From assembly GCF_000142905.1 (NCBI RefSeq), contig NW_013657644.1, positions 239,697 to 303,696 on the forward strand: a stretch of 64,000 nt of DNA, in the 5' to 3' direction. A program made the translations under genes and the position numbers. The notes beneath the pieces are model-generated. The model was not told the origin of the DNA. It saw only the letters and a program-made list of their open reading frames with translations, and searched no databases. Origin of the DNA: Thecamonas trahens ATCC 50062. Taxonomy: Eukaryota > Protista > Apusomonadida. Below, piece by piece: positions 25,969 to 56,258 of the stretch; position 1 is the stretch's first letter, and every line of letters begins with the position of its first letter.

Positions 25969-28900
25969 GATGGAGGGAGAGGAGGTGCTGGTGGCTGTGC
26001 CTGGGGTAGCTGCGCTACGACCTGTATTGCTGCCGGCTGTGCGACCTGACCTTCCACCCGGCTTTGACCTGGAGATGTGGACGGGCGGAGCGAGTAAGGC
26101 CAAGGCGACGACCGAGGCAGAGACGGAGGTAGAGACGGAGACGGAGACGGAGGTAGAGACGGAGGCAAAGGCAAAGACGGAGACGGAGACCGAGATGGAG
26201 ACGGAGTCCGAGGCGGATGGCCGGGAGGCAGGAGGACCAAGCTCACAGGCTGATGGGGAAGTCCATGGCGTGGACAGCACCAGCTCGGACCAGCGTGTAG
26301 TCGAGCCGGGCGCGGCTGTGGCTCCTGTTGCTTCCGATGGCTGGTCGTCAGAGTCGGATGAAGGTCCCGTCTGCAGGGTGTGTAGGGTTGGGGATGGCGA
26401 CTTGTTTGCTCCGTGTCAGTGTGCTGGATCCATGCGGTACATTCATCAAGAGTGTCTCGAGCAGTGGCTCAATGTCTCTCACGCAGAGTCGTGCGAGGTA
26501 TGTGGCCATGCCTTTGCCTTTCAGCCCATCTTTGATGCTGCTGCGCCGCCTACCCTTCCGTGGTCGGCCGTCATGGCTGGCCTTGTGGCTCGCAGCATGG
26601 GTGCAGCGTCCAACGCGGCACGCATTGGTGCCGTGGTCCTGGCCTGGTTTGTGGTTGTACCGCTTGTCGTCGCTCGAAGCATCCTGGTCCAGATCGGTGC
26701 CATGCCGTGGTCGAGTCTGTTCTCGCTGCGGCCGCCGATCGACGGCCTGCCGACATTGATGACCGAGGCTATGCTCGCGCCTCTGCGCGAGATAGACCAT
26801 GCGCCCGCCGCCTTGCCGCCGCTGGTAGAGTGGGCGGCAGCCGACGTGGCCCAAGGCCGAGACAGCTCGCTGCTTTGGCTGGCGGCATCGACTCTGTCGC
26901 AAGCGCTGGTCGGCACTGTCGCCTGTGTCGGCATCTTGGGCATTCTACTCTCGATCGTGGTGGCAACCGAGTATGTTGCGAGTCAAGGCCTTGACTACGC
27001 CTCGCTGTATGGCCCAAGGGCTGAGGTTGAGGGCGAGGCCGAGGACGAGGGTGAGGTCGAGGCCGAGACTGCGGATGGTGCGGATCCTGGTCCAGCAGCG
27101 GGTGCAGAACCAGTAGAGCTCAATGATGGCGTCGATGCTGAAGGTGATGGTGAAGGTGATGGTGGCGGCGACGGCGATGGTCACGCTGCAGCCGCTGACG
27201 ATGGACGGCTTGTCTGGGGCTTTGGCGGCGCCGAGAACGGTGGTGGGCGCAACGGCCACGATGGTCACGACGGCAACGTGGTGCTGGACGGCCTAGGCCT
27301 CGACGCCGACCTCGGTTTTGGCGCCCGAGGCGACGGGGCGCTCGGCGCCCCAGGCGACGCGTTGGACGTTCACCACGACGAGCTCGGCGAGTTCCTGGAT
27401 GACGACGAGCTCGGGCTGGGCGAGGGCAATCTCGGATTCCGCGAGATTGTGGGCCTCGATGGCGACTGGACCGCGCTCGCGGAGAACGTCTTTACCATTG
27501 GCCTGGTGTTTGTGGGGGTGACAGCAGTCGGCCTCTCTGCACCGCTCATTGTGGGCGGCGTGTTCCACGCACAGTTTCCTGCAGCCGGCCCGGCGTCTGT
27601 GCGGCGCAAGCTTGTGCTGGGCTACGGCATGCTTGCCGTGGTGGCGAGTGCAATGTGGGCGACGCGGATGCTGCTTGGGCGGCGGGCGCGGATGTTTGAC
27701 TTGCCGTGTAGCGTGGTGTGGATGAGCTGGCAGTACGTGCGGCTTGTGGTGTGCACCCTCACCGAGCTCGTTGCTTTTCCGTTTGTGACGGGCTGGCTGG
27801 TCGATCTTGCCTCGCTCCCGCTGGCGATTGAGGGAACGACTCTATCGTCGCGAAAGGCGTTTGCGCGCGAAGCCCCGATAGCATCGGCGGTGCTGCACTG
27901 GTCGTTTGGCATGGGCTACATGATTCTGCTCTCGCTTCTTGTCCAGCGGCTCCGGCGTGTGCTCCGACGCGGAGTCCTGTGGTTCCTCCGTGATCCGGAT
28001 GATCCCGAGTTCCAGCCCTTTCGCGAGATGTTGGAGATTCCGATGCTTCGGCTTGTCCGGCGGATTCTTCTCTCGGTTGTGCTCTATGTGCTGCATATTG
28101 GATGCGTAGTGGGCGTGCCGGTCTACCTTGCGCGGCGCGTGACCAGGGCGCTCGCGCTTCCAGCGACGTCTACGACTGCGCCGCCGATGCAGACTTTGGT
28201 TAATGTCCTCCTCCTGCATGCACTGGTCCCCGTCATCTTTGCTCTCGTGCCGCAAGTCCAGACTGGCCTCGACTCGCTGCTGCGTGGATTGTTCCAGATG
28301 GCGGCGCGGCCGACCGGACTTGCGTGGTACCTGTTTGACGACGAAGCCGACGGCGAGAATGAGGCCGAGCAAGCGGAGCGGCTGGAGCGCGGCGAGACGC
28401 AAAGCCTGGTATTTTTTTGCAGGTCGGATCGCTGCTGGCGCTACTGTGGGCGGCGTGTGTGGCTGTGGCTACGGCTGGGCTCCTCCTTCCGTACCTCATG
28501 GGCTACATCATCGCGCTCGGCCTCGGGTTCTCGATGGAGTCTGGCGCACATGCGGTGTACCTCGGCGGCGCAGCGATGCTGCTTGGCGCACGTGGCGTGC
28601 AGGAGCTGCCGCGACTCGCTGCTGCGATTTCGTGGCACCGACTGGCCGGCGCTGCCAAGCTGACGGTGCTTGTGGCAGCGTGGTGCGGGTTGGTGGCGCC
28701 GCTCACCGGCCTAGTGCTCCAGCACGTGGTCGTCTTCCCGCTGGTGGTAGGCGAGGGACAGACTCCGGTTGTGGCACCGCTGTCCTTCTTTGACCTGGCT
28801 GGCGGGCTTTTGGTCTCGACTGGTGCAGCGCGGATTGCGGCGTCTGTCCCTGGGCCGACACCCTGGCTCCCGTTTGGCTGGATTCTGCGCGAGATCGATG

Positions 28901-29181
28901 AGAGCCTCGGCACGCCGCCACTGGGGCGCGCGCTACGGTACTTAGTCGCCCCTGTCGCCCTGCTCGAGGTGCTCTTCCTGGCGCTGCCTTACGCGGCTGC
29001 GCTGGTTGCCGGGCCAGGGTTGAGCGAGAGTATCCTTCTCTACGGCCACGGCTGCGTGGTTGCAGCAGCCGTCGCAAGCTGCGCCGCGCGCTACGGCTGG
29101 CAGTGGCTTGTGCAGATGCGCGAGGATCTGCACCGGGAGCGGTTTTTGGTGGGAACGAGGCTGGTCAATGCACAGGAGTGA
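25969..29181 (+). CDS. MARCH6: RINGv (RING-CH) membrane E3 ubiquitin ligase MARCH6/Doa10; reading frame changes at about 28412-28418
   Basis: RING-CH domain CRVCR...PCQCAGSMRYIHQECLEQWL...CEVC. TD domain FPFVTGWLVD...LRRGVLWFLRDPDDPEFQP. The C-terminal RERFLVGTRLVN lies in the -1 frame. Confidence 0.9.
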
Positions 29182-29257
29182 AGCTGAAAAGCGCGAGGCG
29201 AAGGCGGCAGTGTTTGTGCGGGTGCAGAAAAGAGTGTGGTCCAGGTAGGCAAAAGCG

Positions 29258-31241
29258 TCAGGGGTCCGAGCCGGAGCGAAAGGCAAACGGGTCGGCGTTG
29301 GCCTCTGTCTGCGGCTCGTCAAAGAGCGAGACGTCGCGCTTGCCGGCGGCAAGGTTGCGCTGGCGCTTGAGTGCCGACGGGGAGCAGGCATGGAGTTTGG
29401 CGACCGGCGACGAGCCCATGCGTTTGCGGCGGCCGCGGCGCGAGTAGGTGCGCGCAGTGACGACCGCCGGGTTTGGCGGAGCGCGATTCTGTCGCTGCTC
29501 CTGGGCCCGTCGCTGCCAGACCGGGATGTCGTTTGCGCGCGACGGCTGCTGCGGTGGCTGCGATGACTTGCTCGACAGCGGTGGCGATGGCGAGAGCGAG
29601 AGTGAGAGCGAGGCCCGGATGGAAGGGTCTCGATGCGGCCTGGTTGCGAGCTGGGGCTCAGGCTCGGGCTTGGGCTCTGGTGCCGGCTTGAGCGGCGGGT
29701 TTGAGGCTGAATCATGCCCCGAGTCGTGTGCCGAGGCGGGGGCCGAGGCCGAGCCGCTGCTGCTGTCGCAGGGCGCGGCGTACGATGGGCTGACTCGCGT
29801 GGCCACCGGCTTGCCCTTGCGATTGTGCCTGTGCTTGTGCTTGTGCTTGTGCTTGCGCTTGTGTCTTGGACGTGGTGGGACGAGCGCGGCGGTGGCGAGA
29901 TGCTGGGTGCGGGTGGGCGAGACGTGGAGAAGCGAAGCGGCGCGAGCATGCTCGCGCTCGCGGAGCTCGGCGCGCTCGCGCTCTGCGGCAAGCTGGGCGA
30001 GCTGGAGCTTGTTCTTCTCGCGCAGAAGCTCGTTTTCGCTGCGGGCGTGGCCGAGCTGGAGCTTGGTCTCGGCAAGCGAGGCGCGAAGGGCGGCGATGTC
30101 GTCTGCGGCGGCCTTGGCCCGGGCGTCTGCGCGGTCTGCGGCGGCGGATGCGGTCTGCAGCTTGTGGGTGAGCGAGCCGACGCGCGCGTCGGCGGCAGCA
30201 GTCTTTGCGGCAGCGGAGCGAGCAGCAACTTTGAGCGAGGTGATTTCGGCGACGAGAGCCTCGATCTGCAGCTCTTGGTCGGTGTTGTCGGTCTCAAGAT
30301 CGCGAAGCTGGACCAAGACCTCGTTCTTGAACTTGCCGGCGCGCCCCACTGCCTGCTCAAGCGCACCGATCTTGGCCTGGTACGCGTCCATCTGGAGGAG
30401 CAGCGCCGAGAGGCGGCGGTCCTGGGTCTCACTCTGAGTCGAGACCTCTTCCAGCTGGGCAACAATCGACCGGTACGAGAGACTTAGCTCGGCGTGCGCG
30501 TCCTTGGCCTCGCGCGCCTCGGTTTCTAGCTCCTTGAACTTGCGCCGCCAGTTGTCCATCCGCATCCGCTGCTCGCGTGCCTCGGCCTGCATGTGCGCAG
30601 CGGCTGAGAGAAGCTCAGCTGAGAGCGCGCCGCCAACACCGTGACCCGTTACGCCGCTCCGCAGCTTGCGCAGCGGCTCGGCCTCGGCGAGGTGGTCGTT
30701 GCTGGGACCTGCGTCGAGAGGGCGCGCACGACGTCGCGTCGCGGCGAAAAATGGGTTGATCAACCGCGCGATCAACCGCGTAGCGGAAAAAGGTCGTAGA
30801 GTCCAAGCGGCGCGGCTCTGTGGTGAGTGCGAAGGGGGGAGGGGGCATGGGCATGGACAAGGCAGGACCAGGTACAAGGAAGCTTACCAGCGCGGTGCGG
30901 ATGCGGCCCTGTGATGCGCAGATGGTGGGTGCCGAGCCTCCGCGGCGGCGGCTGGGGGTACGGGTCCATCGATGCTGGCCCAGCGAGGAGAAGCTGGTTC
31001 TGGGAGGCACGATGCGATCGCGGAACGCTGTCATGGCGCTCGCGGTCATGCCCACGCATTGCGCGCTCGTGGTGCTGGCTTGCATGTGGCCGGTAGCCAT
31101 CCATCCGTCCGTGTGAAGCCTGCTGGCCTTCTCCGGCCTCGTTGGCCCACATCCCGCGGAAGTACTCCATGCCCTGCGCTGGCGACAAGCGTGTAGCCCA
31201 GTGTACAGGCTTGGACGATCTGATCCAGCGGCCGCCTGCAT
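29258..31241 (-). CDS. Coiled-coil protein; exon 29258-30817 plus a probable upstream exon beyond intron 30818-30887
   Basis: Long heptad-rich region (RRKFKELETEARE...ENELLREKNK) and KH-repeat tail. The gtaagc...cacag intron joins in phase 0. The 5' end is uncertain. Confidence 0.6.
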
Positions 31242-31359
31242 TCATTGAATGATTGCCAATCGGGTCCAGTCTGTTCCAACCTGCGGCGTGACGGCGTACC
31301 TGTCGCTGATGAGCGCGCTGTGGCCACGGCCGGGCCGGGTTGTGGCGCGAGCTCCTGAC

Positions 31360-34300
31360 ATGACCTTGAGCAGCGGCATCGCGAGCGGACCACACCTTGG
31401 CTGGCTCCACGAACCGTGCTTCAACCCCAGCCACGCTCCATGGCTTCGTGGCGGGTCGTCGCGAGCGTGCTACGAGTGCTGCCTGGAGGCGGTGGTGGCG
31501 GCGCTGGGTCCAGGAAAAGGTCGTGGCGATCAAAGCCGCGCCGATCGCGATCTCGCCACTGCGCGGCAGGACGAAGCAGACTTGTCTGTGGCTGGGCATG
31601 GGCTGAGCTGGCTATGCGCAGAAGGCCTCTCGGCCGTGTGCGAGGCGGCAAGCAATGGACGACAGCCTGGGCTGGAGTTGGCACTCGTGGACGCGACTGC
31701 GGGCGCTCTGGTCGCCGGGCTGAGCACGCAGGGCCTGGCGGTGGCGGCTGCGCGTACGTTGGCCCCAGGCGGTGCTGGCTGGCTCGACGCGGTTGTGACC
31801 CAGGTGGCTGACGGTTGGGCAGATGCTGGCGTGCTGGCGGCTGCAAGTGCACTGTGGGTCCTCGGCCGTGGGTTGCGGTTGTGGGCGCCTGTCGCGCGCG
31901 GGCTGGAGCTTGCGGCCGGCGGCGGGATCGGGTTTGGTGCACTGGCCGCAGCATGGGCTCACGGCGAGCTCGACGCCGGGCTCGATGCGGTGCTCGACAG
32001 CGTGCTGGGAGAAGAAGCCGAGTTGGGCAAATGCGGCGATGGATGCGCCTGGCTCCACGAGGTCCTGCTAGAGCTGCTGGTTCCGCTTGCAGTGGTTGAT
32101 TGCACGCCCGGCAATCGGGCGAGGGCAAGCAAGTGCCTAGCGCGGATGCTCGAGGCGAGCCGCCGGCTGGTACCGGCAGGATGCAGTGGTGCGGGCCAGG
32201 AGCTTGTTGGCGCGGTGTGCGCAACCGTGTCGGCTGGTGACTGGGGCCGCGGGGTGGAGCGTGCGGCGACGGCATGGATGGAGGCGTGGATTGAGGCGGC
32301 GCTCTCGCGAGAGGATGCCGGCAGAGCTGGGCCTAGATATGTGGGCTTTGTGGACGCGCTTGCGGACGAGGTCTTTGACGCGCAAAGCCTCGTTTCGGGA
32401 CTTGTTGCCCAACGGCGCGGCGCGCCAGCGGTGGCGGCGACGATGCTGACCCGGCTCGTAGCGAGCCGCGCGGTGGTGTCTCAGGTCCCGCAGCTGCTGC
32501 ATGCGTGCATGTCAGTGGTGTCGTCGCGTGTCAGTCGCGGGTTGCGTCTCGACGACGATGCGGTGCAAGCTGTGCTTGGGCTTGTGGAAGAAATGGCGGC
32601 GCAGCTCGGAGAAGTGGTGAGCACGGCGGTGTGCGAAAGGAGTGGGCGTGTGGTGGCTGCTCTCGTTGATGGGCTTTCTGCGCTTGCCCACGAGTCACGC
32701 GACGGCCTGCTTGCGGCACTGGGCTTGTGGCAAAGCATAGCGAAGTGCGCCGGTGAAGCGCTGATTGAGGTGGGCGCGGAGCTTGTTCTCAGCTGGGCGC
32801 ATCTCATCGAGGCGCTCGTGCGGCTGAAGATTGACGTCCAAGTTGTGGCGGAGCTGGTGGCACTTGCTGCCGCCGCCGCATTGAGCTCGGCGTCGAGCTC
32901 TCTTGCTGTCGGCCGGCTTCTGAATGATCTTGTTCTCCCAGCCCTGGTTGTTAGGCCGGTGATCGAGCTTGTGCTCGAGTCGCTTGCGCCGAGCACGGTG
33001 GCCGAGTTTGTGCATGGACTGGCGACGATTGTGGTGCAGGCATCGGCCAGCGGCGACGGCGCCCGCGGCTGTGTACTTGTGCTGGCTGCCAATTCTTCGG
33101 TTGAGACCGGGGGCGCGGTAGTCACCAAGCTCCGCGACGTGGTGGGTGCACTGCCTGTCGGCGCGGCACATCTTCTAGAGCCGCTTGAGTGCAGCGGATG
33201 CCTGGCGGGTGTGTCGTGCGCAGGCACGCGGCTCGGACCGCGGTTGCAGGCTGTGCTTGGCCTCTTGCTCCGGGCACCGGGCTGGGCGCTGCCGTGCGCG
33301 ACGCACCCCACGGTCGAGCTCAGCAGCGAGTGCGTGGTGTGGCTGGCGAGAATGATCCAGGTTTTGCGCGACGAGCTGTGTGCATGCCTCGGGTCGGCGG
33401 CGGCGCTGGCACGGCTGGTGGGCACGCTCCGGCATCCGCCGTGGGTCATCGCGGCGAGCAGCAAAGCGGGCGGGCTTGTGGCGCGGCTGGCGCTGGTCCT
33501 TGCGGCGGATCCATGTGCTGCAGACGAGTTTGTGCCGAGCCCACCAGAGCTTCGGGTCTTGATGCGGGCGGGCGAGGTCGAGAGTGTGGCACGAGTTGTC
33601 AACGTGCTTAGTCAGTGCGAGGCCGGCCGGCCGGCACTGGTGTGGTTGCTGGCGTGCGACGCCGTGTTTCGGCTGGCCGTCGATGTGGCGGCGCGGGTGG
33701 CGAGGCGGACGCGGCAGGAGATGGCGGCGACTGCGATGTGGCTCCTGAAGACCAAGGGCAATCCAGCAGGTGTGCTCGTGGCGGTCGAGGTTGCAGAGGC
33801 AAGCGTGAGCGGAACCGTGGACATGATCCGCGAGGTTTTTGAGGCGGCACCGGCGCGGAGCGCGGCGTCGCTTGTGGTGCCGCTGGTTTGGCACGCCGGA
33901 CTCTTTGACGCCTACGATGGCGCGAGCTCGACCGGGCTCAGCGTCTCGCGTGCGATGCTTGATGCGTGCTTTAGGGCAGCGGTGTGCGGCGAGGAGCTGT
34001 TTACCGAGCAGGGTGTGTGGGAATCGGTGTTGGCTGTGGCCCGGGCTGCGTCGCAGGCGTGTAGCCTACAGCGCAGCAGCTGCATCGGCGGAGCCCTCGA
34101 GGTGCTAGCGCGGGCAAAGACACTCTTCAAGCTCGAGGCGCACTTGAGTGGGCGGAGCGAGGGCCGTGCGTGCCGAGTCCTGGACGAGATGTTCTGCTCG
34201 TGCGATGTGCGGGCGCAGGTGGCCAGCGTCGGGGCAAGCATCGCGAGCCATGCCGGAGTGATGGCGCAGTACGTGGCAAGCCTGTTTCCGGAGCGAGACA

Positions 34301-34839: not shown

Positions 34840-34882
34840 ATCGAGTGATGCGCGTGGAAGACTGGGAGGGACGTGGTCGCGT

Positions 34883-36259
34883 TTACGGCTCGGGGTTGTC
34901 GTCCTGGAGGGAGCGGAGGATAGAGCCAAAGATGGCGCGGCGCTTCTGGTGCGAAGTGATGGAGTCCTGTGTGAGGGCAACGAGGGCGTGCTGCAGGTCG
35001 ACTTCACGGCGGGCGTGGAAGCGGGTGAGCTCGGCCTGGAGGCCGGCGGTGATCTCGTCAAAGGCCATCTGGTACTCGCGGGCCTTGTCGTCGAGGGCGT
35101 CGATCTTGGACTCGAGCTTTGCGACGGCAGACTCCTTGCCAGGCTTTTCGCGGGCCTTGTCGAGAGCGGCGCGCTTTGCGTCGCCCGCGGCGACAGTGTC
35201 CTGCCACTTGATGTATGCCTCGGCGCGGGCGACGAGGGCAGCGCGAGCGAGGTATGAGCCGCGAACGTACTCACCGAGGGTGGCGCCAAAGGTCTCAAAG
35301 ACGGAAGTGGAGAGCTCGCGGTCGATGAGCGAGACGCGGTACATGCCGTCGCCGGTGGCGGTGATCCACTGGGCGAGCGGCGGCTGCGAGAGCTCGGCGA
35401 GGCCGGTAGCTTCGTCGGAGAAGCCGTCGAGGACGTCGGCAATGTCGACAAAGACGCGAGCCTGGGCCTTGAGGCCGGAAGCGGTGGCCTTGAGGCCTGC
35501 GGAGAGGTGGTCGAGCTGGTCCTGAGCCATGGAGAACTCGTCGTTCTCCTGCAGGTTGGCGGCGTGGAGGCGGGCCATGGAGAACGAGGTCACCTTGGAG
35601 AAGATGTCGCGGGCGAGGTTCTTGGAGCTCGGCAGCGGGGTTTCGGACTCGAGGAACTCGATGGTGACCGAGGAGCGGGCCAGGCGCGGGTGAGCAGCAA
35701 TGGTCCTCAGGAACTTCTGCAGGCCGCGGCGGCGGTACTGAAGGAAGAAGGCGTCAAACTTGTTGTACTCGCGCTTCTCGGGCAGCGGCGGGATGATGAC
35801 GCCCGGGTAGCGATCGAGGAGCTCGGACTGAAGCCAGAGGAAGTCACGGTAGCGGCGGACGACGGTGAACGAGGTGCCTGCAAACACATCCTCGGTCGTC
35901 TTGGTCGAGACGGCATAGGTGGTGAAGGCGCCAGCGCCCTTGGCACCCTTCTCCTTCGACTTGGCCACCTGGACCTCGATCTCTACATCGGGCACCTCTC
36001 CATCGACCACTCCCCGCGAGTAGGTCCTTGCTCTCCGTGGCGGGGAGACCGACCTCGAGTACGACCGCGAGCGCGAGGGCGAGCGTGACCGTGACCGTGA
36101 CCGAGACCGAGACCGAGACAACGAGCACGAGCGCGAGAGCGATGGTGACCGCGACCGCGAGCGAGACGGAGTTGGAGACCTAGGCCGAGAGCGGGGAGGA
36201 GATGGAGAACGTGACCGGGAGTCACCTCCAGGCGAGATCGACCGGGACCGCGAGTAGCT
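34883..36259 (-). CDS. Sorting nexin (PX-BAR) with an N-terminal RS-rich region; first exon probably in the gap
   Basis: PX domain VVRRYRDFLWL...YPGVIIPPLPEK...RRRGLQKFL...HPRL, followed by a BAR coiled coil ending ELTRFHARREVDL. Acceptor catag| at 36260. Confidence 0.9.
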   Translation of the reverse strand, partial: SYSRSRSISPGGDSRSRSPSPPRSRPRSPTPSRSRSRSPSLSRSCSLSRSRSRSRSRSRSPSRSRSYSRSVSPPRRARTYSRGVVDGEVPDVEIEVQVAKSKEKGAKGAGAFTTYAVSTKTTEDVFAGTSFTVVRRYRDFLWLQSELLDRYPGVIIPPLPEKREYNKFDAFFLQYRRRGLQKFLRTIAAHPRLARSSVTIEFLESETPLPSSKNLARDIFSKVTSFSMARLHAANLQENDEFSMAQDQLDHLSAGLKATASGLKAQARVFVDIADVLDGFSDEATGLAELSQPPLAQWITATGDGMYRVSLIDRELSTSVFETFGATLGEYVRGSYLARAALVARAEAYIKWQDTVAAGDAKRAALDKAREKPGKESAVAKLESKIDALDDKAREYQMAFDEITAGLQAELTRFHARREVDLQHALVALTQDSITSHQKRRAIFGSILRSLQDDNPEP

Positions 36260-36507
36260 CTATGTGTGAAGGTGGTGAGTGGCAGTGGTGGTGACGGTGC
36301 AGGGGCGGGGGNNNNNNNNNNNNNNNNNNNNNNNNNNNNNNNNNNNNNNNNNNNNNNNNNNNNNNNNNNNNNNNNNNNNNNNNNNNNNNNNNNNNNNNNN
36401 NNNNNNNNNNNTCAAAATATTCCCCAAAACAAAAAAAGCCAAAAAAACACATAACAAAAGAAAAAAAGGGGGGGGGGGATTTCCCCCTACAAAACAAAAC
36501 CACGGTC

Positions 36508-40695: not shown

Positions 40696-40962
40696 CCCTC
40701 AAGCATCATCGAGTCATTCACTTTGAGACGCGCGACAACGCGTCCGAACGACCATGCCGTTGACTTCCAGGTCACCGGTCGATACTGCGCGACGCCTGCT
40801 TGGCCTGCGGCTTGAGGTGGGAGGCGCGCCCGCACGCGATGGCGGCCGACACGAGACGCCCGCCTGAAGGATGCCCGAGTTGCCGTCGCGGTGACGACGC
40901 CGACGACCGGGAAGGAGACCGTGCCAGAGTTGAACACAGCGGCCAGACGGGCAAGTGGTGGC

Positions 40963-41062
40963 ACGCCATCTTGTACTGGGTTCTGGACGCCGCGTACGTG
41001 CTCTACGCTGACGCCATCTTGTACTGGGTTCTGGACGCCGCGTACGTGCTCTACGCTGACGC
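40963..41062. repeat. Perfect 48-bp tandem duplication
   Basis: acgccatcttgtactgggttctggacgccgcgtacgtgctctacgctg occurs at 40963 and 41011. Confidence 0.95.
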
Positions 41063-41348
41063 GAGCCCACGCCCTGCCATGACTCGCGTGGCTTTTCTCT
41101 ACGACATCATCGACGCCCTCGCCGCCAGCGCCGCGCCGTCGCACAAGCGGAAGCGCACCTCTGCAGCAGCCGGAAGCTTCATGGTAAGCGATCGCGGCCG
41201 CGGACCTTTTGCGCCGCGTGCAGCGTCCATCTCTGCATCGTCGACTGTTTTCTGTTGTGGCCCATCAGTGGCCACAGCAGCCATTAACACATTGTACTAC
41301 TCTGCTACCACGATTGATGGAGGTTGTAAAGGGTTACAGCGTCCAGCA

Positions 41349-43130: not shown

Positions 43131-44878
43131 ATGCATGCAACACCACCGCCTACGCCGCCTATGACGCCGCGGAGCATTCAGCATGCGCTCCGTGCGCGGG
43201 CGTCGGCAGGAGCGTCCAAGGTCAGGGCAAGCGCCTCGTCGGTGGTTCGGACCACGCTCTCTGTCCTCCAGCACTCGCTCTCTCTCTCGGATCGCATTGT
43301 TCATTGGCTCATTCAGTCTCGTCTGGCAAGCCGTCTCCTCCTTCCCCGCAACTGGCTCGCTATCACCTGCCTCCTGATCTTGCCCTACGTGGCTTACCTT
43401 GCTCCGTCGTCTCAGCCTGGTTGGGCTCCCCTGACTCTCAAGGTCGGCCTCACTTCGCTCGCGCTATGGCTGGCAGGCCAGCTCCTTGCTACGCTGACCT
43501 CGATCTATGTTGCCCGCCGTTGGGTCTTCATCCCCAGGCCCACCAAGGGCGCTCCGCTCACCAGCGAGCCGCTGGTCATGGTTCGTCGTAACGCCACCCG
43601 CAAGTCATGGTCGCCGAACCGGCTCAAGCCGCCGCAGGTCCTTCGATGGGACATTCTCGGCGTGGGTATGTCGTTTATGTTTGGCAAGATCACCGCTATT
43701 CCGCTCTGGCGCCCGCTCCGGGCCCCGATCTTCAGCGCATGGGCCAAGCTCTTCCACGCCAAAGTCGACGAGGCCGAGCACGCGCTCGACCACTACGCCT
43801 CGTTGCAAGATTTTTTCACCCGCGCGCTCAAGCCCGGCCTCCGCCCTGTGGCCGACTCGATCCTCACCTCGCCCGTCGACGGCACAGTGGTGGTGGTCGG
43901 CCCGGTCGAGTCGGACCGCGTCGAGCAAGTCAAGGGCGTCACGTACTCGCTGACCCAGTTTCTCGGACAGGACTCGGCGACCCTTATCGACTCGGCGTCG
44001 CTCCCGCGTGAGGCCGATGCCCATGACGACGCCCCGGGCCTCCCGCGCGAGGTTCTCGACGCACAGCGAGTCAACGACGACGACATTGCGCAGGAGGCGC
44101 TCGAGCTCCTCTCGCACTCGGACGGCTACGACTCGGCGTCATCACTGCTCTCGCTCACCTCGCACCCTGTCGAGTCGCTCCTCACCGTCATTCCCGAGTC
44201 TGAAATCACACTCGAGTCGCAGTCGGAGTTGCGGATGCGGTCGCGCGGGCCGTCGGCGCAGGCCGGCGACAACGGGCCCCGCGCCGGCTCGCCAGCCTTT
44301 GCTGGACCGGCCGGTGTCGACAGTGGGCTCGGCATCGCGCCCGAGCCCGACCTCTCCGAGCCAACGACTCGGCTGTATCACATGGTCATGTACCTCGCGC
44401 CTGGTGACTACCATCGGGTTCACTCGCCGGCCAACGTTAACTTTGACACGCTCCGGCACTTTCCGGGCACCCTCTTCCCCATCTCGCCGATTGTGGCGCG
44501 ACTCATTCCGGACCTCTTTTCGCTCAACGAGCGCGTAGTCATGACCGGCGAGTGGGACTTTGGCTTTTCTCGCAGACTCTTGTTGGCGCCTACAACGTCG
44601 GCTCCATCCAGATCAACTTTGACTCGCAGACCAAGACCAACCGGCTGCTCCGCGACTTCCGCTGCCCCAACCTCGAGCTCTTCTCCTTTGGTGGCGTCGG
44701 CTGCTTTGCCTACAACCGCAACTATGAGAAGCCGATCGAACTCGCAAAGGGCGAGGAGCTGGGTCTCTTCAACCTTGGCTCCACCGTCGTTCTCGTCTTT
44801 GAAGCTCCTCTCGACTTTGAGTTCACCGTCGGCCCCGGCGACAAGGTCCGCATGGGCCAGGCCATCGGCCGCGTCTGA
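43131..44878 (+). CDS. PISD: Phosphatidylserine decarboxylase (mitochondrial PSD1 type); reading frame changes at about 44565-44568
   Basis: Frame 1 holds FFTRALKPGLRP, SPVDG, EQVKGVTYSL, YLAPGDYHRVHSP and NERVV. The -1 frame holds VGAYNVGSI and the FNLGST autocleavage motif. Confidence 0.93.
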
Positions 44879-45377
44879 GAAGTACAGTAGCTACGGCAAT
44901 GAAAGGAGACAAGGCTTGAGACGTGATCTGGAGCCGTGTCATGTCTGGGCAGTAGCCGCTTGTGCTTCCCGAGGCTAGACGTTGATCTGTTCAGCCGACA
45001 ATCGTCTGTCTACGCATTCGCCGGATGCTGCCAGTCCACGCCCACCGACTGGCAACCATCGACCACCAGCCGCCAACCCGGGAGCCAGGGCCAAGGCCAA
45101 GCGCACCCCACCCCACCACCACCACCACCACCACCAACCACCAACCACCGCCACCGCTACCCACTAGCTAGTCAGCCACCCTTTCTCCATCTCCACCATG
45201 TCCACTGCCCGACGCAGGCGGCCACCACAGTCGCGACGGGCAGAGGGGGTGGCCAGCAACGGAAGGAGTGGTGGTGGACAGAGGCGACACGCGCTGCGGA
45301 AACTGCCCAAGTTTACAGCAGGCCACACACGGCTATCTACTCATGGATCATCCATTTCAACACGATTGAGGATTGCC

Positions 45378-47782
45378 ATGGCTCGGACTCAAGTCAGTGT
45401 ACCAAACCATCAGCAGGAGGGGAGGGCCAGGCGAGGTGGTCCTCTCGGATCAAGTCAACGTGGTCTGCCTCTGGCTCCACCTCCGCCTGTCATCGATCTG
45501 GCGCCATCTCCGCCACCACCGGCGTCAGACGCATCGAGTGATAGTGGACGTCCGGTCGTGACACACTCGTCAAGTCACTTGCTCTCGGCACCAGGAACGT
45601 CAGATGACACGCTGCCGTCGCTCTCGATGTCGTTGCGGAGATCGTACTCGCTGTCAAACACCGATGAGGTGTTCTACCTGCCAGACCCCAAGGCTCTGCC
45701 AACTTACGACACCGCCCACCAGGCCATCGACCGCAAGACTGCCATTCCGTCCGGCCCGGTAGCGTCAGCCAAGCCGCAGCCACAGCCGAGTGGACATCGG
45801 TCAATATCTGCGGACCACAGCCTGGCCGGGACCCGGTCGCGGCTTCACGGTGCGGCCGCGCACTCGCACTCTCACGGACGGATCCAGCTGGCGAAAGCCA
45901 TTCGTGGGGCGCGGGCGTCGTCGACAAGGCCCAAGTTTGTGCGCGAGCTCGAGCGGTTCATTGCGTCCGAGCTGGCGGCGCTTAAGGATGCCACCGGGAC
46001 CGAGGCCGAGCCGGTGTACATTGCGCGCGAGCGGGTCCAGATCTTCCGCGAGGTCTTTGCGCTCCTCATCGAGGAGTTTGACGTCTACAAGTCCCTCCTC
46101 GCCACCATCAAGTCCGAGTACGAGGCGGCACTGAGCACGGTCTCGCGCGAGGTCGACGCCCTGCGCCCGATGCGTCCGGCGCTCGCCACGCTCAAGCGCG
46201 AGACTACCGACGAGGTGGCGCGTCTGCAGGACGAACATGCCCGGGTGGTGGCCCAGCTCAAGGCCCAGCGGACGGCGATGCAGGAGCACATGGCCAAGCA
46301 GCGTGCGCAGCTCGAGGCCGAACAGGCAGAAAAGGCCGCCCTCCACGACCGCTTGCTCACCGCGGAGACGCTCACTCAGCACAAGTCTCAGATGCACAAG
46401 CTCCTCTACGATCGCATCCATGCCAAGGACGCAGAGCTCGCAGTGGCGCTCTCGGCGCATCGCGACATCTCGGCCAAGTACGCGGCGTCAAAGAAGCGAC
46501 TCGAGGACGTTCTCTTTGAGTTGCGCCAGACCGAGGATGACTTGGTCATCCTCCGCAAGTCGCTGCAGGAGATGCGGCCGGCGGCCGAGGTGGCGGCGCT
46601 AGAAGAAGCTGCCGCCGCCGACGCGGCAACCATTGCCTCCCTCGAAGCCGCGCTGTCTGCGGCCGAGGAGCAGCTCCGCATGGCCCGAGCCCAGAGCTCG
46701 CGGGCCGAGGCGGCAGCTGCCGGCGGCGGCGAAGCCGGCACCGCTGTTTCCAGCGGACAGGCAACGCCTTTGGGCGAGCGCTCGATCTCGGGCCCACACG
46801 GCTTGCAAGGTGTCTGGGGCCATAGCGGCTCAGCCGGCGACGTCGACTCTGGTCGGGCCGCGGCGCTGTGGGCGATTTGGTCGTCAGACTTTGCGCTGCT
46901 CTCGCACACCAACCAGCTCGCGCTGCGGCGGATGGTTGCCGCGGGCGCTAGTGTCGACGAGGTTGTCGCGGTCCTCATGCAGGGCCTGGTCGAGCTGGAG
47001 CGCCGGTCCGGTGTCCGGGCCCGGATCCCCGAAGCCGAGACCGATCTCGATCGGACCGAGCTGGCAGCGCGGATGCGGCAGTCGCAGCCGGGCGAGTTTC
47101 CTGCACCGGGCACCGGGCCGAACGTGCCGACATATCGCGCCACCGACGCACCGGTCCCCAACCTGCAGTTTGGCAAGCGCAAGACCGAGGATATGATTGC
47201 GGCCATCTGGGCGGCGCGGGACGAGAGTAAGAGCGGAGTCGACCTCGAGACCTTCCTCACCCAGTGGTCACACAAGCGGTACGGTCCACGAGCGGCGCTC
47301 ATGATGATCAACCTCGAAGAGGCGTGTCTGGTGTGGTCAGCCGACCCGGACTGCGCACTGTACCTGGCCATCATCCACAACGCCGTGCCCGAGTCTGTCC
47401 GCCACGATGAGGCATCCGAGGTCGACACCGTCATCGCCCATCTCCGTGACGCCGACGCTGCCGTCAACGGCGGGCGGGCCAAGGGCAAGCTCCTGCTCAC
47501 CCAGATGGTCAAGGCCCTTCTGTCGGCCTTCCCGACAAGACTGATGCCCAGCTCGACGCCCTCGTTGGAGAGCTCAAGTACGGCCTCACCCGCGGCTTTG
47601 GCGTCCGCACCGGCAACAACTCTCCGAACCCACCCATCCGCTACGAGGCCCTCTTTGAGGATGACAAGTTTGCCTCACAATCGCCCTTTGCTGAAGAGCT
47701 CCGCCACCAGCATCTCGAGGCAGCGCTCCAGCGCGACACATCCCCTCCGACCTCACCATCCACTAACGATGCCATCCAGTAG
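45378..47782 (+). CDS. Translin-associated factor X-interacting protein 1 (TSNAXIP1)-like coiled-coil protein; reading frame changes at about 47530
   Basis: TSNAXIP1_N-like PKFVRELERFI...RVQIFREVF..LIEEFDVYKSLLATIKSEYE; FPAPGTGPNVPTYR; ADPDCALYLAI. The C-terminal YEALFEDD...QSPFAEEL lies in the -1 frame. Confidence 0.75.
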
Positions 47783-47815
47783 CGATGCCATCCAGTAGCG
47801 ATGCCATGTAGCGAC
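47764..47815. repeat. Short tandem repeat (cgatgccatccagtag) x2-3
   Basis: aacgatgccatccagtagcgatgccatccagtagcgatgccatgtagcga. Confidence 0.8.
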
Positions 47816-47986
47816 ACAAATGCAGTACCGATAGATGCACACCGATTGCCATGACTGCTGCAGTCAGTGGTAGTCAGCAGCTGGCCGGCCAGCTCCTTTG
47901 CCGCCCGTCGGCTGTAGCCAAGCTAGCGAGAGCAAGAGGTGGAGCCACTTGACGCCGACACGCGGGACTCAGTAATCGACGGAGCC

Positions 47987-49474: not shown

Positions 49475-49524
49475 ACCCGACTCGGGAAGGAGGGGGGGGT
49501 CTGGGTGTGTAGGACAGAGGCGAC

Positions 49525-50565
49525 ATGGCAGACACATACAACGGGCGACTCAAACCAGGAGCTTACAAGGGCGTGCTGGGCGCGAGTGAGTCGCACGACA
49601 CGCTGTCGGCCACCAAGGCCAAAGTCGATGAGTTGGCGGCGCTGGTGGCCGGCGCTCGGCATGTGGTCGTTCATACTGGTGCGGGCATCTCGGTCGGGGC
49701 TGGCATCGCAGACTTTCGATCAGCGACGGGCGTGTGGACGGCAGAGGCGGTGGCGGCTGGGGAGCTGGATGTGGAAGATATGGGCAAAGTGAGCTCGGCA
49801 TCAAGACCGCCGTCTGAGGCCATGGACGCTGTCGCTGCTCACGGCTTTCGAGCCGCCCGCCCGACGTATGTCCATCGGGCGCTTTCCTTTCTTGTCGCGC
49901 GAGGCATCGTTGCCTTTATCGTCTCGCAGAACGTAGACGGCTTGCATCTGCGGGCAGGTACGCCGGCAAGCAAAATTGCTGAGCTCCATGGGAACGTCTT
50001 TAAGGAGTGGTGCGCCAAGTGCGGTGCCGGGTACGTGGGCAAGGTCGAGCTCAAGTCGGTCGGTTTCAAGCCGACAGGTCGAGTCTGTCTCCGCTGTAGG
50101 GGGCCGATGCTCGATTGCATACTCGACTGGGATGATGCGCTGCCGGCAAACGCGCTAGACGCGGCCATTGCCCACTCGCGGGCGGCGGACCTCTCGATTG
50201 TCCTGGGTTCGTCGCTCCAGATCGCCCCGGCCCGCGGACTGCCGGTCCGGACAACACGTAAGAATGGCAAGGCTGCTCCAGGTGCGCTCGCTGTTGTCAA
50301 CCTTCAGCCAACTTGTGTCGACCGCCATGCTGCTGTTCGCATCGGGTACGATGTCCAGGGTGTCATGGCTATGCTGATGGAGCGATTGGGGCTGGGCGAG
50401 GCGCTGGGCACATGGGAGGCACCGCCGCCTGTACTCGGCTGGATCGACGCACCTGAGTCGCCACAGGCAGCAGCGCGAAGCACCCGCAAGCGAGGGCAAA
50501 GGCCGTCGACTGATGAAGAGCCCAGCCTGGCGCCAGCTGTCAAGAGGAGCAAGGGTTTAGAGTGA
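49525..50565 (+). CDS. SIRT6: NAD-dependent deacylase, SIRT6-like (class IV sirtuin)
   Basis: Motifs HTGAGISVGAGIADFRSATGVWT, SQNVDGLH, ELHGN, CxxC, ILDWDDALP, LGSSLQIAP and VVNLQPT. C-terminal basic NLS-like sequence. Confidence 0.9.
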   Translation: MADTYNGRLKPGAYKGVLGASESHDTLSATKAKVDELAALVAGARHVVVHTGAGISVGAGIADFRSATGVWTAEAVAAGELDVEDMGKVSSASRPPSEAMDAVAAHGFRAARPTYVHRALSFLVARGIVAFIVSQNVDGLHLRAGTPASKIAELHGNVFKEWCAKCGAGYVGKVELKSVGFKPTGRVCLRCRGPMLDCILDWDDALPANALDAAIAHSRAADLSIVLGSSLQIAPARGLPVRTTRKNGKAAPGALAVVNLQPTCVDRHAAVRIGYDVQGVMAMLMERLGLGEALGTWEAPPPVLGWIDAPESPQAAARSTRKRGQRPSTDEEPSLAPAVKRSKGLE

Positions 50566-53500
50566 TGGCGGCGTCGGCGAAGGCGGTGACGAGCATGCAG
50601 CACTTTTCGCGGCGGCGAGCTGGTCGCGGAGCACACTGAGCTGCGCCTCGTGAGAGATGTGCACGCGGAACAGGTTGCGATCGCGCTGGGTGAGTTCGGC
50701 CTGGAGCCTGTCGATCTCATTGCGGAGATTGGTAGTCTCAGAGGTGACGTCGCGAAGGGCCGACGACTCGCCGTGGAACAACGGGGTGGCATGGAGCTCG
50801 TCATCGGTGACAAGGAGATGGGCAACGTCGCGAGAGGCAGTGGTGGCGCCCGCGCGCAACGCCGGCGACACGCCGCCCTTGCCGTCGGCGGTGACACCAA
50901 GGCCGAGCACGGTCATGACCCACCAGTTTCGCTTTCGAATCCACGGCAGCAGTCGCAGGTTGGCGAGGATGGCGAGGAGAATGAACAGCAGGAACACAAA
51001 CGAGATGACGACAACGATGATGTGGTCGAGCGTTCCGATGTCGGTCGACGACAAGTTGCTCACCTGGTCCGCCGACGAAAACAGTCGCAGCTCGGCCTGG
51101 ACAAGGAGCACCGCCACGATGAGAGAGACGAGCGAGACAAGCTCGGCGAGGTTGACCAGCGAGGTCGAGAACGGCGCCCACCAGCCCTGGAGCGCAAGCT
51201 CGGCACCGAGGACAGAGACCACCGCCAGCGGGCCAAACGACGAGGTCGGCGCCGTGATCGAGAGCACGACCGTGACAAAGATGCGCCGGGCGGTGAAAAA
51301 CATCTCGAACCACCATGCGCCCGGCCGGAATGACTCGTAAAGGATCGAGTACTTGGTGCGGACGGCAAGCGAGTCGAGGGCGCCCGTTTGCGCGGCATAG
51401 AAGACAACGCCGTGAGCGTAAAAAAGGGCAATCGTGTACACAATCATGGCCCCCGTCCCCCACCACGCCATACGGACGTAGTCGTGCTCTTGTCGCGAGC
51501 AGCGGATCCACGGCGCGGCGCGCATGTACAAATCGCCGTCACCCGGCACGCCCGACGAGTCGCACGAAAAGAGCGAGAGGTAGATGCCAAGAACGGGAAA
51601 GTAGACCATGTACAGGATGGCAATCAAGATGGAGATGATGAGCCATAACAGCCGGTGGAGGCGGGTCGTAATCCTGGTGTAGATGGCCCCGGCAAGCGCT
51701 TGGGCATCCTGACGGTGCCGTACGCTGCGCCGCAGCCACCAGCCACGGACAACGAGCCAGCAGGCGTACACGCCAAAAACAAGTAGCGCAAAGGCGGCGT
51801 AGATGAGCGGCCCCAACATGACGAGGACAAGAATGGTGGGATATGTGCTGGCAAACGACGTGCGCGAACAGATACTGGGCGTGACAATGAAAATGCCGTT
51901 GTTGAAGACGCGAAAGAACGAGAAGAGTTGCGGGAGAGTGATCGGAAGCGTAATTACGTTCATGGTCTGGAACCAGATGGTGGTGACCTTGTAAAAGCCC
52001 GAGTTGACCGCGAGCGTCTGGCGGACTTCCCACAACGGAATGTCGCCGAGAAAGCCTCCAAAACTCTGGTGAGCATCGACAGTGCCTGTGCGAGTCGACT
52101 CGTTGATCGGGTTCGCCATGAGCGGGGTTCGGAGGTCGGCGGTGCCGATGCCAGACGTCTTGGCAGCTTCGAGGTCAAGAGGGAGCGAGGAGCGGACCAG
52201 AAAGTGAAAAGAGACTACAACAAAGAGAAACAGCTCAACCATGAGGGCGGTTGTGGACATCGCATACGAGGCTGCGGCAACGGTGATGCAGCCGACGAGG
52301 ATGCCGACAAGAAGAAGCTCTCGCCAGTAGGTGCGAAGAAAGAGCGGGATCGACGGGTTGCGGTGGTACGCCGCGCGGCGCTTGGCCCGCATCGGGTTCT
52401 GCTCGCGGGCGCGGAGAACAATCAAGGCGGTAAGTGCAGCAGTGATCATGAGCGACGAGGTGACGGCGTTGATCTTGCTCGACGCGGCCGAGCTGCAGTG
52501 GCGGCACTCGCCTTGGATGTAGTAAAAGTAGCCGTCGGCACACTGCGAGCAGAGCCGGCCGTAGTAGCCCGGCAGGCAAAGGTCACCAGTGCAATTGAGC
52601 CGGACGGTGTCGGGCTCGGTGGCGTACGGCACGCAAGTCACGTTTCCAAACGGGTTGCAAACCGAGGTCCGGTGAATGTTGACGGTTGAGGTGCACGGCA
52701 CAAAGGCTGAGGCGGCCGAGGACTGCGGCGCCGGCCAGTAGCCGACGGCGGGCTGAACGGCGCGCGAGCTGGCGGCCGTGGTGGCACAAAGCCTGCCGTC
52801 GGAGCAGTATGAGACGGCGGTCCGACACCCAGTGGTGGCGTTTGGAGAGGCCGAGACAACTCCGGTGTAGCCTTGGATGCATGAGCAGAGCTGATAGCGG
52901 TAGTAGGACGGGTCGATGGAGACGACCGAGCGCCGTGAGGAGTCAGTGAGGCCGGGACACGCGTAGTGATCCAGCGGGAACTTGCGCTCGGTAACCGGGT
53001 CCGGCACGAGGAACGACTCGACCGGAGTGACGCTCGCTATCATCCGGGCGTTACCATGCAACGAGAGGAAGCGGAGATTGGTGGCGAGGGCAACGGCAAA
53101 CGAAAGCGGGATGCTGCCGACAAAGTCGTTGTCGGAGAGATCGAGGGTGGAGAGGCCGTACGGCAGGTTGAACGATGAAGCGAGGGCAGTGCGCGGAAGT
53201 CGACCCTCGAGCCTGTTGCTCGACAAATCCAGGTAAGAGATCGAGGGAAGAGGAGCAGAGTGTCCGATGCGAGCTGGCCGCCGATGCTGTTCTCGCTCAT
53301 GATGAGCGTTTCCATCGAGACAATGCTAGTCCGTCCGGCGTCGACGCAAAACGGCCAGTTGCTGGCCACTGCGCCGGGTGGTGCACGCATCATGCGAGTC
53401 AGCGCCTGAAGAAGCGAAGAGCCGCCAAATGCACGCGGATTGGCGCTCACGTCCAGGAAACGGAGATTTGCAGTCCACTTGCAGACAAACTGCGTCTGTG

Positions 53501-54848
53501 AGAGGAAGAGAGCCTCGACGTAGAAGACAATCGGTGGCGCAGCGAGTGCGTTGGCACGAAGTGAGAGGAACTTCAGTGACGGCTGTTCGTCGACGTTCCA
53601 GTCAAGGCCGTTGATGGCATTGTTGGAGAGGTCGAGGAGCGAGAGCGAGCCGAGGCTTCCGATGCTTGCCGGAACTTGCCCCGTCAAGTTGTTCGACCGA
53701 AGAAAGAGGCCGACAAGAGCGGCGCAGTCGCCCAGCTCCGGGGGGATGGGACCGGTGAGCTTGTTGTCCGAGAAGTCAATGTGGACAGCAGAGCACGAGG
53801 GAGGAAACAGGCCATCCAGCGAGCCGGTTAGCCTGTTTGAGCTGAGCGTGAGGTTCCCGAGCGATGCGCAAAGAGCGAGGGTGAGCGATGGCGGAAGCTC
53901 GCCGTGAAGCGAGTTGTAAGAAAGATCAAAGGTGCTGAGGGAGGCATTTGCCGAGAACCTGTCCGGGATCGTTCCCGTGAGGAGGTTCATGGCAAGATCG
54001 ACGTGCGCGAGCGCTGGGTTCCCGACATACGACGGTGGAATGATGCCGGAAAAGCTGTTTGCGCGGAGTGATATGGAGGCCATGCCAGGGGTATTGGCCA
54101 GCCAGGCAGGGAGCGTTCCGCTGAGACTGTTTGCAGAGAAGTCCAGATAGCGCAGGTTCGACCAGGTGGCCGGGCGGGTAGGCGGGAGCTCGCCAACCAT
54201 ATTGACTGCCGAGACGGACAAGAAAGTAGCCCGCAAGTTGAAGAGCGCAGGCGGGATCGGGGCCGGTGCCAGGTCGAGACCCTTGAGGTAGACTTTGCTC
54301 AAGTTGGGCATGTCGGCGAGACAGTCTGGCAGCGAGCCCGTGACCAGCGGAGCGTTGATGATGCCGATGACCGACATCGGCTTGACGGCACAGATAGCGT
54401 CCGAAAAGTCCCCGACGAGGTTGTTCGAGTTGATGAACATGCCAGCGAGCGAAGAGCTGTGGTTTGAAGTGAGGAGCCATGCCCACGGCAAGCAGCCAAA
54501 GTCATCGATACGATAGCAACAGGGATTAGACTCTGGTTCTTCCCATCCATAGTTGGTATCCCAATGAAGACCACCGAGACCATGATACCACTCCAGCAGC
54601 GCAGCCTTTTCCTCCTTTGGAAGGCATTGATCATCCATGTTGCGGGTACGATCCCAGGTGAGCTCGCCCACCGGTTTCCGGACACGATTCGCAGCAAGAG
54701 CCACCTTGGCTTCAGCAAGCTCTACCGAGGGGGACGACCTCGGCATGGAAGCGCAATTGACAGAGAGAGATGCAGTAAGGAAGAGAGCGACGAGAATGAG
54801 GAGTGTGGCCGTGGTGCTCCCATGGGCGGTGGTGGAGGTGCAGGACAT
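50557..54848 (-). CDS. Large LRR, Cys-rich, multi-TM receptor-like protein; reading frame changes at about 53245
   Basis: Signal/TM segment, LRRNT-like cap, many plant-type LRRs (LxxLDLSxNxLxGxIP), CLPGYYGRLCSQCADGY, TM block with LYESFRPGAWWFE, C-terminal coiled coil. Confidence 0.85.
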
Positions 54849-54996
54849 GGCGGGCAAGTTGAGTGTGGTGTGACGCCTCGCTGAAAGAAATTGGCCCACC
54901 TGCGTGCGGCGTGAGCAGATGCGGATTGCACGCAATGTTCAATGGCTACGTGCGGAAAAGGCAAGAGAGCCTCGTGGGAGATGTTGGCCATCGCGT

Positions 54997-56258
54997 TTAT
55001 GGTCGGGGCGAGGGAATGGTTGGGCGCCATGGAACTTTCCAAGACTTGGCGAGATCGTCGCGGGCGTCAGAGGTGAAGATCTCGGCGAGCTCGTCGGTGG
55101 ACGCAAGGTAGATACGGCGGACAGCTGGGGGTGCAGCACCCGAGGCGGCGGTGGCCTTTGGGCCGACCGGAGGCGGAGGCTGGATGGGGAGTGGAATGCC
55201 GTCGGCGGAGGGGAGGGCGTGCATGGGGCGGATGGCGATGCGCTTGACGCCGCGGCGGTCGATGTCCAGCAGGCGGCCGCCGCGCTTGTACACATCGGGG
55301 CTGCGGTGGGACGACCGCGAACGAACCTGAGACATGACCTTACTCAAAACCATGTCCCAGTCAGCCTGGACGAGCTTGCGACGCTCGGCGCGGCGGAGGC
55401 CAAGCGCACGCTTGCGCTTGTGGCGCTCGATCTTGGCGATGCGACGGGCCTCGGACTCTGCCGGATCGGCATTGTTGTCAGGATCTGGCGCGCTTGCCTC
55501 ACCACGGTTGGAGCTGGAAGACGAGTCCGAGAGCCAGCCAGCGTCGCCGCTGTGCGCATTGACGCCGTCTTCGTCGTCGTCGTCATCGTCGTTGTTGACG
55601 AGCTCACCGCCGCCACCGTTTGCAGTGGAAGAGGCGGTGAGCGAGTCGGGATGAGCGTTGAGCTTTGCGCGCTCGATGGCGACTGCGCGAGCCATGAGCA
55701 TTTGCAGACGCGAGCGGCGGGCCTTTCGGTGCGAGCCTGCGGCGGTGACCGAGGCGGTGGCCGCCGACGCCAGACGCTCCTGCCGTCGGCGCATCCGCTC
55801 TGCGCGAACGTTCTTGGTGTCAAAGCCCTTGATGCCCCACTCTGCAGCCAAGCCAGAGGCAGCATCGGTAGAGGCGGCGGCCCGCTTGGCTCGACCAGGA
55901 AGGCCTGAACTTGGCGCCGAGTGGAGTGGATGGCTACCACGGATGCGCGGGTCGAGTCGCTTGAGTAAGCGATCCAGACCACGCTGATGGGCATCAACCT
56001 GAGCGATGGGTTTGTCAAGAAAACATCATCAGGAATGAGTTCAACTCCAGGCAGCGATGTCGTCTTCTTTGCCTCTGACCGTCGACTCCTCAGCGCCCTT
56101 CCTTTTGCCTCCTTCCTCGACGCAGCTGCGTTCTCCCTTGCTCGCCGCCTGGTCATCTGAGCCACCACCCTCTTCCGAGACGAAGTGTCCAACTCGGCTT
56201 CCAAGGACGCCACCAGCGAGTCCAGCGCATCCCTTCGTGGTTGACGACTTCGTTGCAT
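54997..56258 (-). CDS. Hypothetical basic/acidic protein; two ORFs joined by a probable -1 frame change at about 56014-56025
   Basis: MQRSRQPRRDALDSL...IPDDVF continues as LDKPIAQVDAHQRGLDRLLKRLDPR...AAEWGIKGF in the -1 frame. Confidence 0.55.

Follow-up and report, generated by a model that had tools for sequence, protein, structure and literature searches.

Five genes in the 64,000-nucleotide stretch of the Thecamonas trahens genome analysed here (the window) appear to be split between two reading frames, which raises the question of whether the organism recodes its nuclear messages or whether bases have been lost from the assembly. A sequence-only reading kept assembly error as its default and also proposed an undescribed nuclear recoding or editing system; pervasive -1 recoding without a signal in a nuclear genome would, if true, be unprecedented. 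We put at about 93% the probability that all five breaks stem from base-call errors in the consensus of the draft assembly. The contig does not resemble human DNA: it has a GC content of 64%, is dense in genes and poor in introns, and carries a protist-type gene content.

Four of the five proposed splits (MARCH6, PISD, TSNAXIP1-like and the LRR receptor) are real frame breaks in the sequence, each repaired by the addition of one base; the fifth is weak and could not be localised. Every confirmed break is one base short, in agreement with the uniform -1 direction claimed earlier. In the MARCH6/Doa10-like gene (plus strand, about 25760-29181), Pfam profiles show that the upstream frame, 25760-28417, carries RINGv and that the -1 frame, 28417-29178, carries MARCHF6_C, with the break at a T7 run (28412-28418). 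In PISD (plus strand, about 43233-44875), positions 62-130 of the PS_Dcarbxylase profile are matched in one frame and positions 134-198 in the next. The conserved GFFS is split here as GF/FS, and since GEWDFGF and FSQTLVGAYNVG abut without a gap when aligned with homologues reading GFFS, exactly one base is missing at the TTTT of 44565-44568. Placement to the base was feasible at this T4 run and probably at the MARCH6 T7 run only. In the TSNAXIP1-like gene (plus strand, TTCCC at 47529-47533, downstream piece 47531-47779) and the LRR-receptor gene (minus strand, sense-strand TTCCC at 53245-53249), the codon statistics change frame at the places given earlier, and LRR matches flank the latter break, which falls between two leucine-rich repeats. 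Both positions hold to within 10 nt on either side; the loss may have occurred in TT, in CCC or at a single base.

The sequences and coordinates first given agree with the window except at the fifth site, which was shifted by one: GTT TTC TTG occupies 56024-56016 of the minus strand. There, the frame change in the hypothetical gene would fall somewhere within 55900-56025 (minus strand), for which the claimed site (56016-56024) is the upstream limit only; the coding score of the upstream frame is about zero, and neither piece has a Pfam match. Because a protein database search for PISD yielded no relative above 43% identity, and a search of the assembly found no second copy of any of the five sites, we infer rather than see the missing bases, which are probably present in the organism's DNA. 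A 100-N scaffold gap at 36312-36411 is unrelated to the five breaks: it separates two divergent genes at their 5' ends, the closest of the five sites is about 8 kb away, and no broken frame runs across it. An Rfam search of the window gave no matches.

The claim that the affected base is always a pyrimidine is secure at two sites and lies within chance overall. Sense-strand runs of at least three bases number 519 for A, 3086 for C, 2812 for G and 2029 for T, so that C or T accounts for 61% of them, and with this supply five pyrimidines out of five have a probability of about 0.1. The pentamer TTCCC is present 132 times and GGGAA 45 times.

An independent sample of about 205 kb of coding sequence outside the window in the same 28.7-Mb assembly yielded 23 further breaks with one base missing. 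Seven or eight of the 17 dynein heavy chain genes have unbroken frames of 4037-4841 amino acids, and the remainder are broken one to three times, a scatter that fits the Poisson prediction at about one event per 14 kb. Paralogue BLAST combined with a codon-model Viterbi search resolved ten broken dynein genes into 14 events with one base missing and two with one base extra. Overall, coding sequence contains about one break per 10-14 kb, and deletions outnumber insertions by about 9:1 in the main scaffolds. At several junctions the longest sense-strand run is G, as at AERG/DEDELY in C68 (GGG), and GGG or GGGG junctions are also found in C42a, C16, C14b, C35 (two) and C83; for the last of these contigs no redundant partner was found. 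TTCCC is over-represented, appearing at 5 of 27 junctions against a background of only 0.52 per kb.

Some calls were discarded. A naive GC3-periodicity frame track proved too noisy and was dropped, and most "one base extra" calls of the Viterbi search were false. Within the window, calls at 22808 and 36012 fell in Ser-rich/RS-rich low-complexity stretches where the true frame is open throughout, and the Viterbi calls at 29261 and 34886 marked gene ends. A BLAST frame map queried with every long open frame picked up contaminating matches in the wrong frame and played a supporting role only.

Since C or G adjoins almost every junction in this GC-rich DNA and placement by homology is therefore usually ambiguous, junction bases were assigned through a likelihood model, not by hand; the test relies on a codon model with a resolution of 10 codons on either side. 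Under maximum likelihood, a strand-symmetric error model driven by run length fits the 23 events outside the window, with posterior counts (A 0.1, C 12.4, G 7.6, T 2.8) close to those expected from opportunity (A 0.9, C 12.0, G 8.0, T 2.1). Adding T/A and C/G asymmetry terms brought no significant improvement (2dLL = 2.1, 2 df), and a model restricted nearly to pyrimidines was about 4 log units worse, or some 60-fold less likely. The interval for the pyrimidine weight, about 0.5-10, includes 1 and reflects modest power. Within that power, the base composition of the breaks is strand-symmetric, and after correction for the supply of runs the errors show no preference for the coding strand. G runs hold about one third of the posterior mass. 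Error per run, taken as posterior events divided by available runs, rises from about 0.04% at a true length of 3 to 1.3% at 4 and 4.5% at 5 or more, and this climb with run length holds whatever the base.

Redundant contigs illustrate the same kind of discordance directly, at a locus other than the five sites. Contig C88 shares 99% identity with its main-scaffold copy, C22:296.8-307.8k, and these copies of one locus disagree in run length through about 17 indels of one base each, which affect runs of all four bases. Some of the indels cluster (three within 14 nt), and a 13-nt indel breaks a WD40 frame; the frame-breaking copy may be either contig.

The breaks exist, and breaks of the same kind, dependent on run length, occur genome-wide. 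That the defect is scattered through the genome, extends to sense-strand G runs, depends on run length and shows itself in disagreement between duplicate contigs argues for ordinary assembly error over recoding, and so bears out the default of the sequence-only reading. One base would have been lost from a short homopolymer in the consensus: a true T8 would be recorded as T7 in MARCH6, a true T5 as T4 in PISD, and the TSNAXIP1-like and LRR genes would each have lost a base from a TT or CCC run. In the organism, the genes would then be intact and normally translated. The pyrimidine bias would be a product of run supply and free site choice, because the coding strand has more T/C than A/G runs and the earlier placements could be chosen freely within wide feasible intervals.

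Homopolymer indel errors in draft consensus sequences from flow-based or long-read data are likewise single-base changes in runs of any base on either strand, with a rate that depends on run length, and they too strike otherwise intact genes at scattered places, make gene models look frameshifted and differ from one redundant contig to another. Frameshifts and premature stops brought in by indel errors have been described (PMC8445201). The present case differs in that the runs are short (2-4 bases as observed) and about nine in ten events are deletions. An excess of deletions of about 9:1 would need a bias of the platform or the consensus procedure and counts against assembly error, as does the concentration of junctions at TTCCC, for which the complement GGGAA, with 45 sites, is too rare for a test of symmetry.

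Ribosomal frameshifting would leave the genomic sequence correct and have the ribosome re-read one base, slipping efficiently by -1 at Phe/Pro codons (UUU/UUC, CCN) with the aid of a tRNA-Phe that lacks wybutosine. We consider this very improbable, even though the precondition of a slippery tRNA-Phe, for which a check of the TYW genes had been suggested, was borne out: TYW1 (PF08608), TYW2 and TYW3 (PF02676) were not detected in the genome, where only one TRM5/TYW2-type methyltransferase gene was found. A Phe codon lies at or beside the junction at all five window sites as originally placed and, judged from the printed junctions, at about 6-7 of the other 23, and TTCCC recurs at the five junctions noted above; yet about two thirds of the junctions elsewhere lack a Phe codon, and the share held by G runs does not fit. 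Canonical -1 programmed frameshifting, as outlined in PMC4759687, combines a slippery heptamer, a spacer and a downstream structure. Here too one base would be read twice, but none of the five contexts (A TTT TTT, C TTT TCT, C TTC CCG, C TTC CCT and T TTC TTG) contains a heptamer X XXY YYZ in the zero frame, and folding of the 100 nt downstream is no stronger than that of shuffled sequences (z = 0.50, -0.05, -0.19, 0.60 and -1.35, pseudoknots left out). For PISD and other essential enzymes with a single gene copy, shifting would have to approach 100%, and we know of no site without a signal that achieves this. Half of the 14-kb dynein genes need no shift at all, events with one base extra occur too, and redundant contigs differ at exactly such runs. 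In Euplotes, the frameshift motif ends in a stop codon. The two cases are alike in that many nuclear genes need a frame change for a full protein, and for Euplotes the account in PMC4759687 gives genome and transcriptome support for pervasive +1 frameshifting; here the shift would be -1, with neither a stop codon nor a motif involved, and the breaks are seen in genomic DNA. Neither a slippery heptamer nor a downstream structure was found at the sites, and the independent sample is not confined to pyrimidines; the proposed nuclear recoding or editing is accordingly not supported and does not stand as a biological claim. There is likewise only a very slim chance that a subset of breaks at UUU/UUC-C contexts, such as the recurrent TTCCC, represents genuine -1 recoding on top of ordinary assembly errors at other runs, in an organism that has apparently lost the wybutosine pathway.

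Co-transcriptional slippage or insertional RNA editing would instead place a U or C into the mRNA at runs. Each confirmed break does call for an added base, and the T7 run of MARCH6 is close to lengths at which polymerases stutter, but the remaining sites are runs of 2-4 bases, far below known slippage lengths, and a search for a long homopolymer or a defined editing motif found only the run of seven in MARCH6. Beyond the run the flanks share no motif, sense-strand G-run sites exist, and the rate climbs with run length for any base, as sequencing chemistry would give; we therefore regard this explanation as extremely unlikely. Editing in Physarum is mitochondrial and dense, with insertions spaced roughly a few tens of bases apart, and is not tied to homopolymer length. 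Single C or U additions would restore frames here as they do there, but the genes in question are nuclear and the events fall about once per 10 kb. It is highly unlikely that the indels are real in the DNA, whether as pseudogenes, mutations fixed in the culture line or heterozygous indels collapsed into the consensus. Collapsed alleles are a known source of apparent frameshifts in assemblies (PMC8445201), and the differences between C88 and C22 could be partly allelic. However, events at this density affect PISD and many axonemal dyneins, with codon bias and conserved motifs intact on both sides, and the three one-base indels within 14 nt of C88 resemble read errors rather than alleles. For MARCH6 alone, a micro-intron of 14 nt (28409-28422) would restore the frame: it begins with GT, ends with AG, is T-rich and has a length of 2 modulo 3. 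GT...AG pairs of suitable length (11-29 nt) are not enriched, however: 8 of the 27 junctions overlap one, and so do 31% of coding positions picked at random. The PISD break leaves no space for any intron, the kinase and dynein genes read through intronless, and a T7 run is the type of site that fails elsewhere, which leaves the micro-intron extremely unlikely.

By extrapolation of the observed rate, short runs across the 28.7-Mb assembly have probably lost single bases at something like a thousand places or more. Any gene model, "pseudogene", "micro-intron" or "truncated domain" derived from it should be read with deletion errors in mind. The deletion bias, the TTCCC hot spot and the lack of detectable wybutosine genes form an unexplained remainder, of which the apparent wybutosine loss is a separate point of interest.

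In each of five genes of the window, the sequence-only reading had described a -1 frame change at a Phe codon or pyrimidine run. All five sequence contexts were found where it had placed them, apart from a one-base shift at the fifth, and three-frame translation, Pfam and codon statistics upheld four of the five breaks. The upstream frame of MARCH6 (25760-28417) encodes RINGv. MARCHF6_C follows in the -1 frame (28417-29178), and seven T in a row (28412-28418) lie at the break. In PISD, PS_Dcarbxylase positions 62-130 match up to 44567 and positions 134-198 from 44567 onward. Alignment with seven homologues, the closest relative found being 43% identical, revealed that the two pieces join without gap or overlap (GEWDFGF / FSQTLVGAYNVG, where homologues have GFFS); hence exactly one base is missing in TTTT at 44565-44568. 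Codon statistics change frame sharply in the TSNAXIP1-like gene and in the LRR-receptor gene (minus strand), the latter with Pfam leucine-rich repeats on either side of the break. The missing base is not placeable in these two genes: TT, CCC and adjacent single bases all fit. The break in the hypothetical gene (minus strand) is weak. Its supposed frame upstream of 56020 has a coding score of about zero, neither piece has a Pfam match, and the position given for it marks only where the downstream frame first opens. We found no second copy of any of the five sites within the assembly.

With a probability of about 93%, we attribute the frame breaks to an artefact in the consensus of the draft assembly; as sequence, the observation is largely real. 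Assembly error had been the default explanation from the outset, and it gains support from breaks elsewhere in the genome, their dependence on run length, the involvement of G runs, and disagreements between two copies of one region. The alternative, a recoding system acting at Phe codons, fared poorly. An in-frame X XXY YYZ heptamer is absent from all five sites, the 100 nt after each site fold no better than dinucleotide shuffles (z 0.60 to -1.35), and most junctions outside the window have no Phe codon. The 14-nt GT...AG unit at MARCH6 does not speak for splicing of a micro-intron: such right-phase pairs overlap 8 of 27 junctions against 31% of random coding positions. At PISD, an intron would not fit between the abutting pieces.

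Searching the genome with the dynein AAA1 family identified 17 dynein heavy chain genes, of which 7-8 are unbroken frames of 4037-4841 amino acids, while the remaining ones are broken. Several form a single open frame of about 14 kb without introns. Ten broken genes were sampled, and their breaks were located by paralogue BLAST and a codon-usage Viterbi path permitting one-base skips (+0.27 nats per in-frame codon, -0.40 per off-frame codon). This yielded 14 events in which one base is missing; with other genes on the same pieces, 23 such events outside the window were vetted. The C14a dynein also showed two one-base-extra events about 70 nt apart (sense positions ~6460-6540); lying on either side of FYFLSDDELLEILG, they move this conserved dynein motif into a third frame, in contrast to the prevailing deletions. 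The breaks are not confined to pyrimidines. Contexts among the 23 include TTTT, TTCCC and CCCC, and also sense-strand GGG or GGGG, at C68 (AERG|DEDELY), C42a (the RV.ANLH motif), C16, C14b, C35 (two) and C83.

The apparent restriction to coding-strand pyrimidines stems from base composition and site choice. In 253 kb of coding sequence (window and other scaffolds), sense-strand runs of at least 3 number 519 for A, 3086 for C, 2812 for G and 2029 for T. Pyrimidines thus make up 61%, so that five of five has a probability of about 0.1, a value that ignores the earlier reader's freedom to choose sites inside intervals about 100 codons wide and does not go beyond chance. Placing the missing base by hand gives ambiguous results in DNA rich in GC, so we fitted a likelihood model covering all one-base insertions up to 45 nt to either side of a junction. 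Three quantities set the weight of an insertion: how well the repaired frame scores under the codon model, a freely fitted weight for the true length of the run, and base terms. The likelihood was normalised by run opportunities in coding sequence. For the 23 events, the strand-symmetric model gave posterior counts of A 0.1, C 12.4, G 7.6 and T 2.8, against expected counts of 0.9, 12.0, 8.0 and 2.1. Adding T/A and C/G asymmetry terms gained only 2ΔLL = 2.1 (2 df, not significant); a pyrimidine weight of 100 versus 1 was about 4 log-likelihood units worse (support interval ~0.5-10). According to the fitted weights, practically every event falls in a run whose true length is at least 3, with implied rates per run of ~0.04% (length 3), 1.3% (length 4) and 4.5% (length 5 or more), a pattern that, under this model, fits sequencing chemistry and not a codon-specific process.

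Two kinase matches with identical scores led to a redundant copy of C22:296.8-307.8k, the 12.7-kb contig C88 (99% identical). About 17 one-base indels (GG/GGG, CC/CCC, AA/AAA, TT/TTT, GGG/GGGG) distinguish the two copies; some are clustered, with three within 14 nt. A 13-nt indel disturbs the reading frame of a WD40 protein in C22, an extra G at C88:1219 disrupts a frame intact in C22, and C88:10094-10171 scores better as coding in the C22 version. Hence both over-calls and under-calls, for all four bases, are present in the project's data. C88 is a leftover contig duplicating part of a main scaffold; such redundant low-quality contigs swell assembly size and gene counts.

Two features are unexplained: deletions outnumber insertions by about 9:1 in the main scaffolds, and TTCCC turns up at more junctions (5 of 27) than its frequency would predict. 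The complementary GGGAA had no events against 1.7 expected, with 45 coding-strand sites (132 for TTCCC) too few for this to have meaning.

A surprise came from the wybutosine genes, whose inspection had also been proposed. Neither TYW1 (PF08608) nor TYW3 (PF02676) was detected in the whole genome, and only one TRM5/TYW2-type methyltransferase was found (C16:311470-311853), which suggests that Thecamonas trahens may lack wybutosine. Some other eukaryotes are known to have lost the pathway, and its loss alone does not give efficient frameshifting.

The window (C36:239697-303696 of a 28.7-Mb assembly in 131 scaffolds) has a GC content of ~64%, with dense genes and almost no introns. Its 100-N gap (36312-36411) separates two divergent genes at their 5' ends; the nearest break site is about 8 kb away, and none of the window's breaks has a frame crossing the gap. 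Detector calls at 22808 and 36012 were false positives in low-complexity Ser-rich and RS-rich regions. A long Arg-Ser dipeptide tract (35900-36260, minus strand) lies at the N-terminus of a PX-domain sorting nexin, in frame with the PX domain, and its codon usage misleads codon-based frame detectors. At the end of the TSNAXIP1-like gene, a 16-nt unit in three tandem copies, the last partial (47767-47811), carries a TAG in each; these stops (47780, 47796, 47809) cover all three frames, so that the shifted and unshifted frames both end in ...DAIQ and a stop. Adjoining the hypothetical gene, 56413-57306 matches about 30 other genome loci at 64-68% DNA identity, probably as a protein domain family present in many copies. 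Finally, a dispersed repeat of about 630 bp (40696-41330; more than 50 genome copies, 70-94% identity) has TTAA on its left flank, inverted ends CCCT...AGGG and an internal 49-nt tandem duplication, and its first 60 nt also match inverted beside other copies; the repeat resembles a piggyBac-type non-autonomous element.
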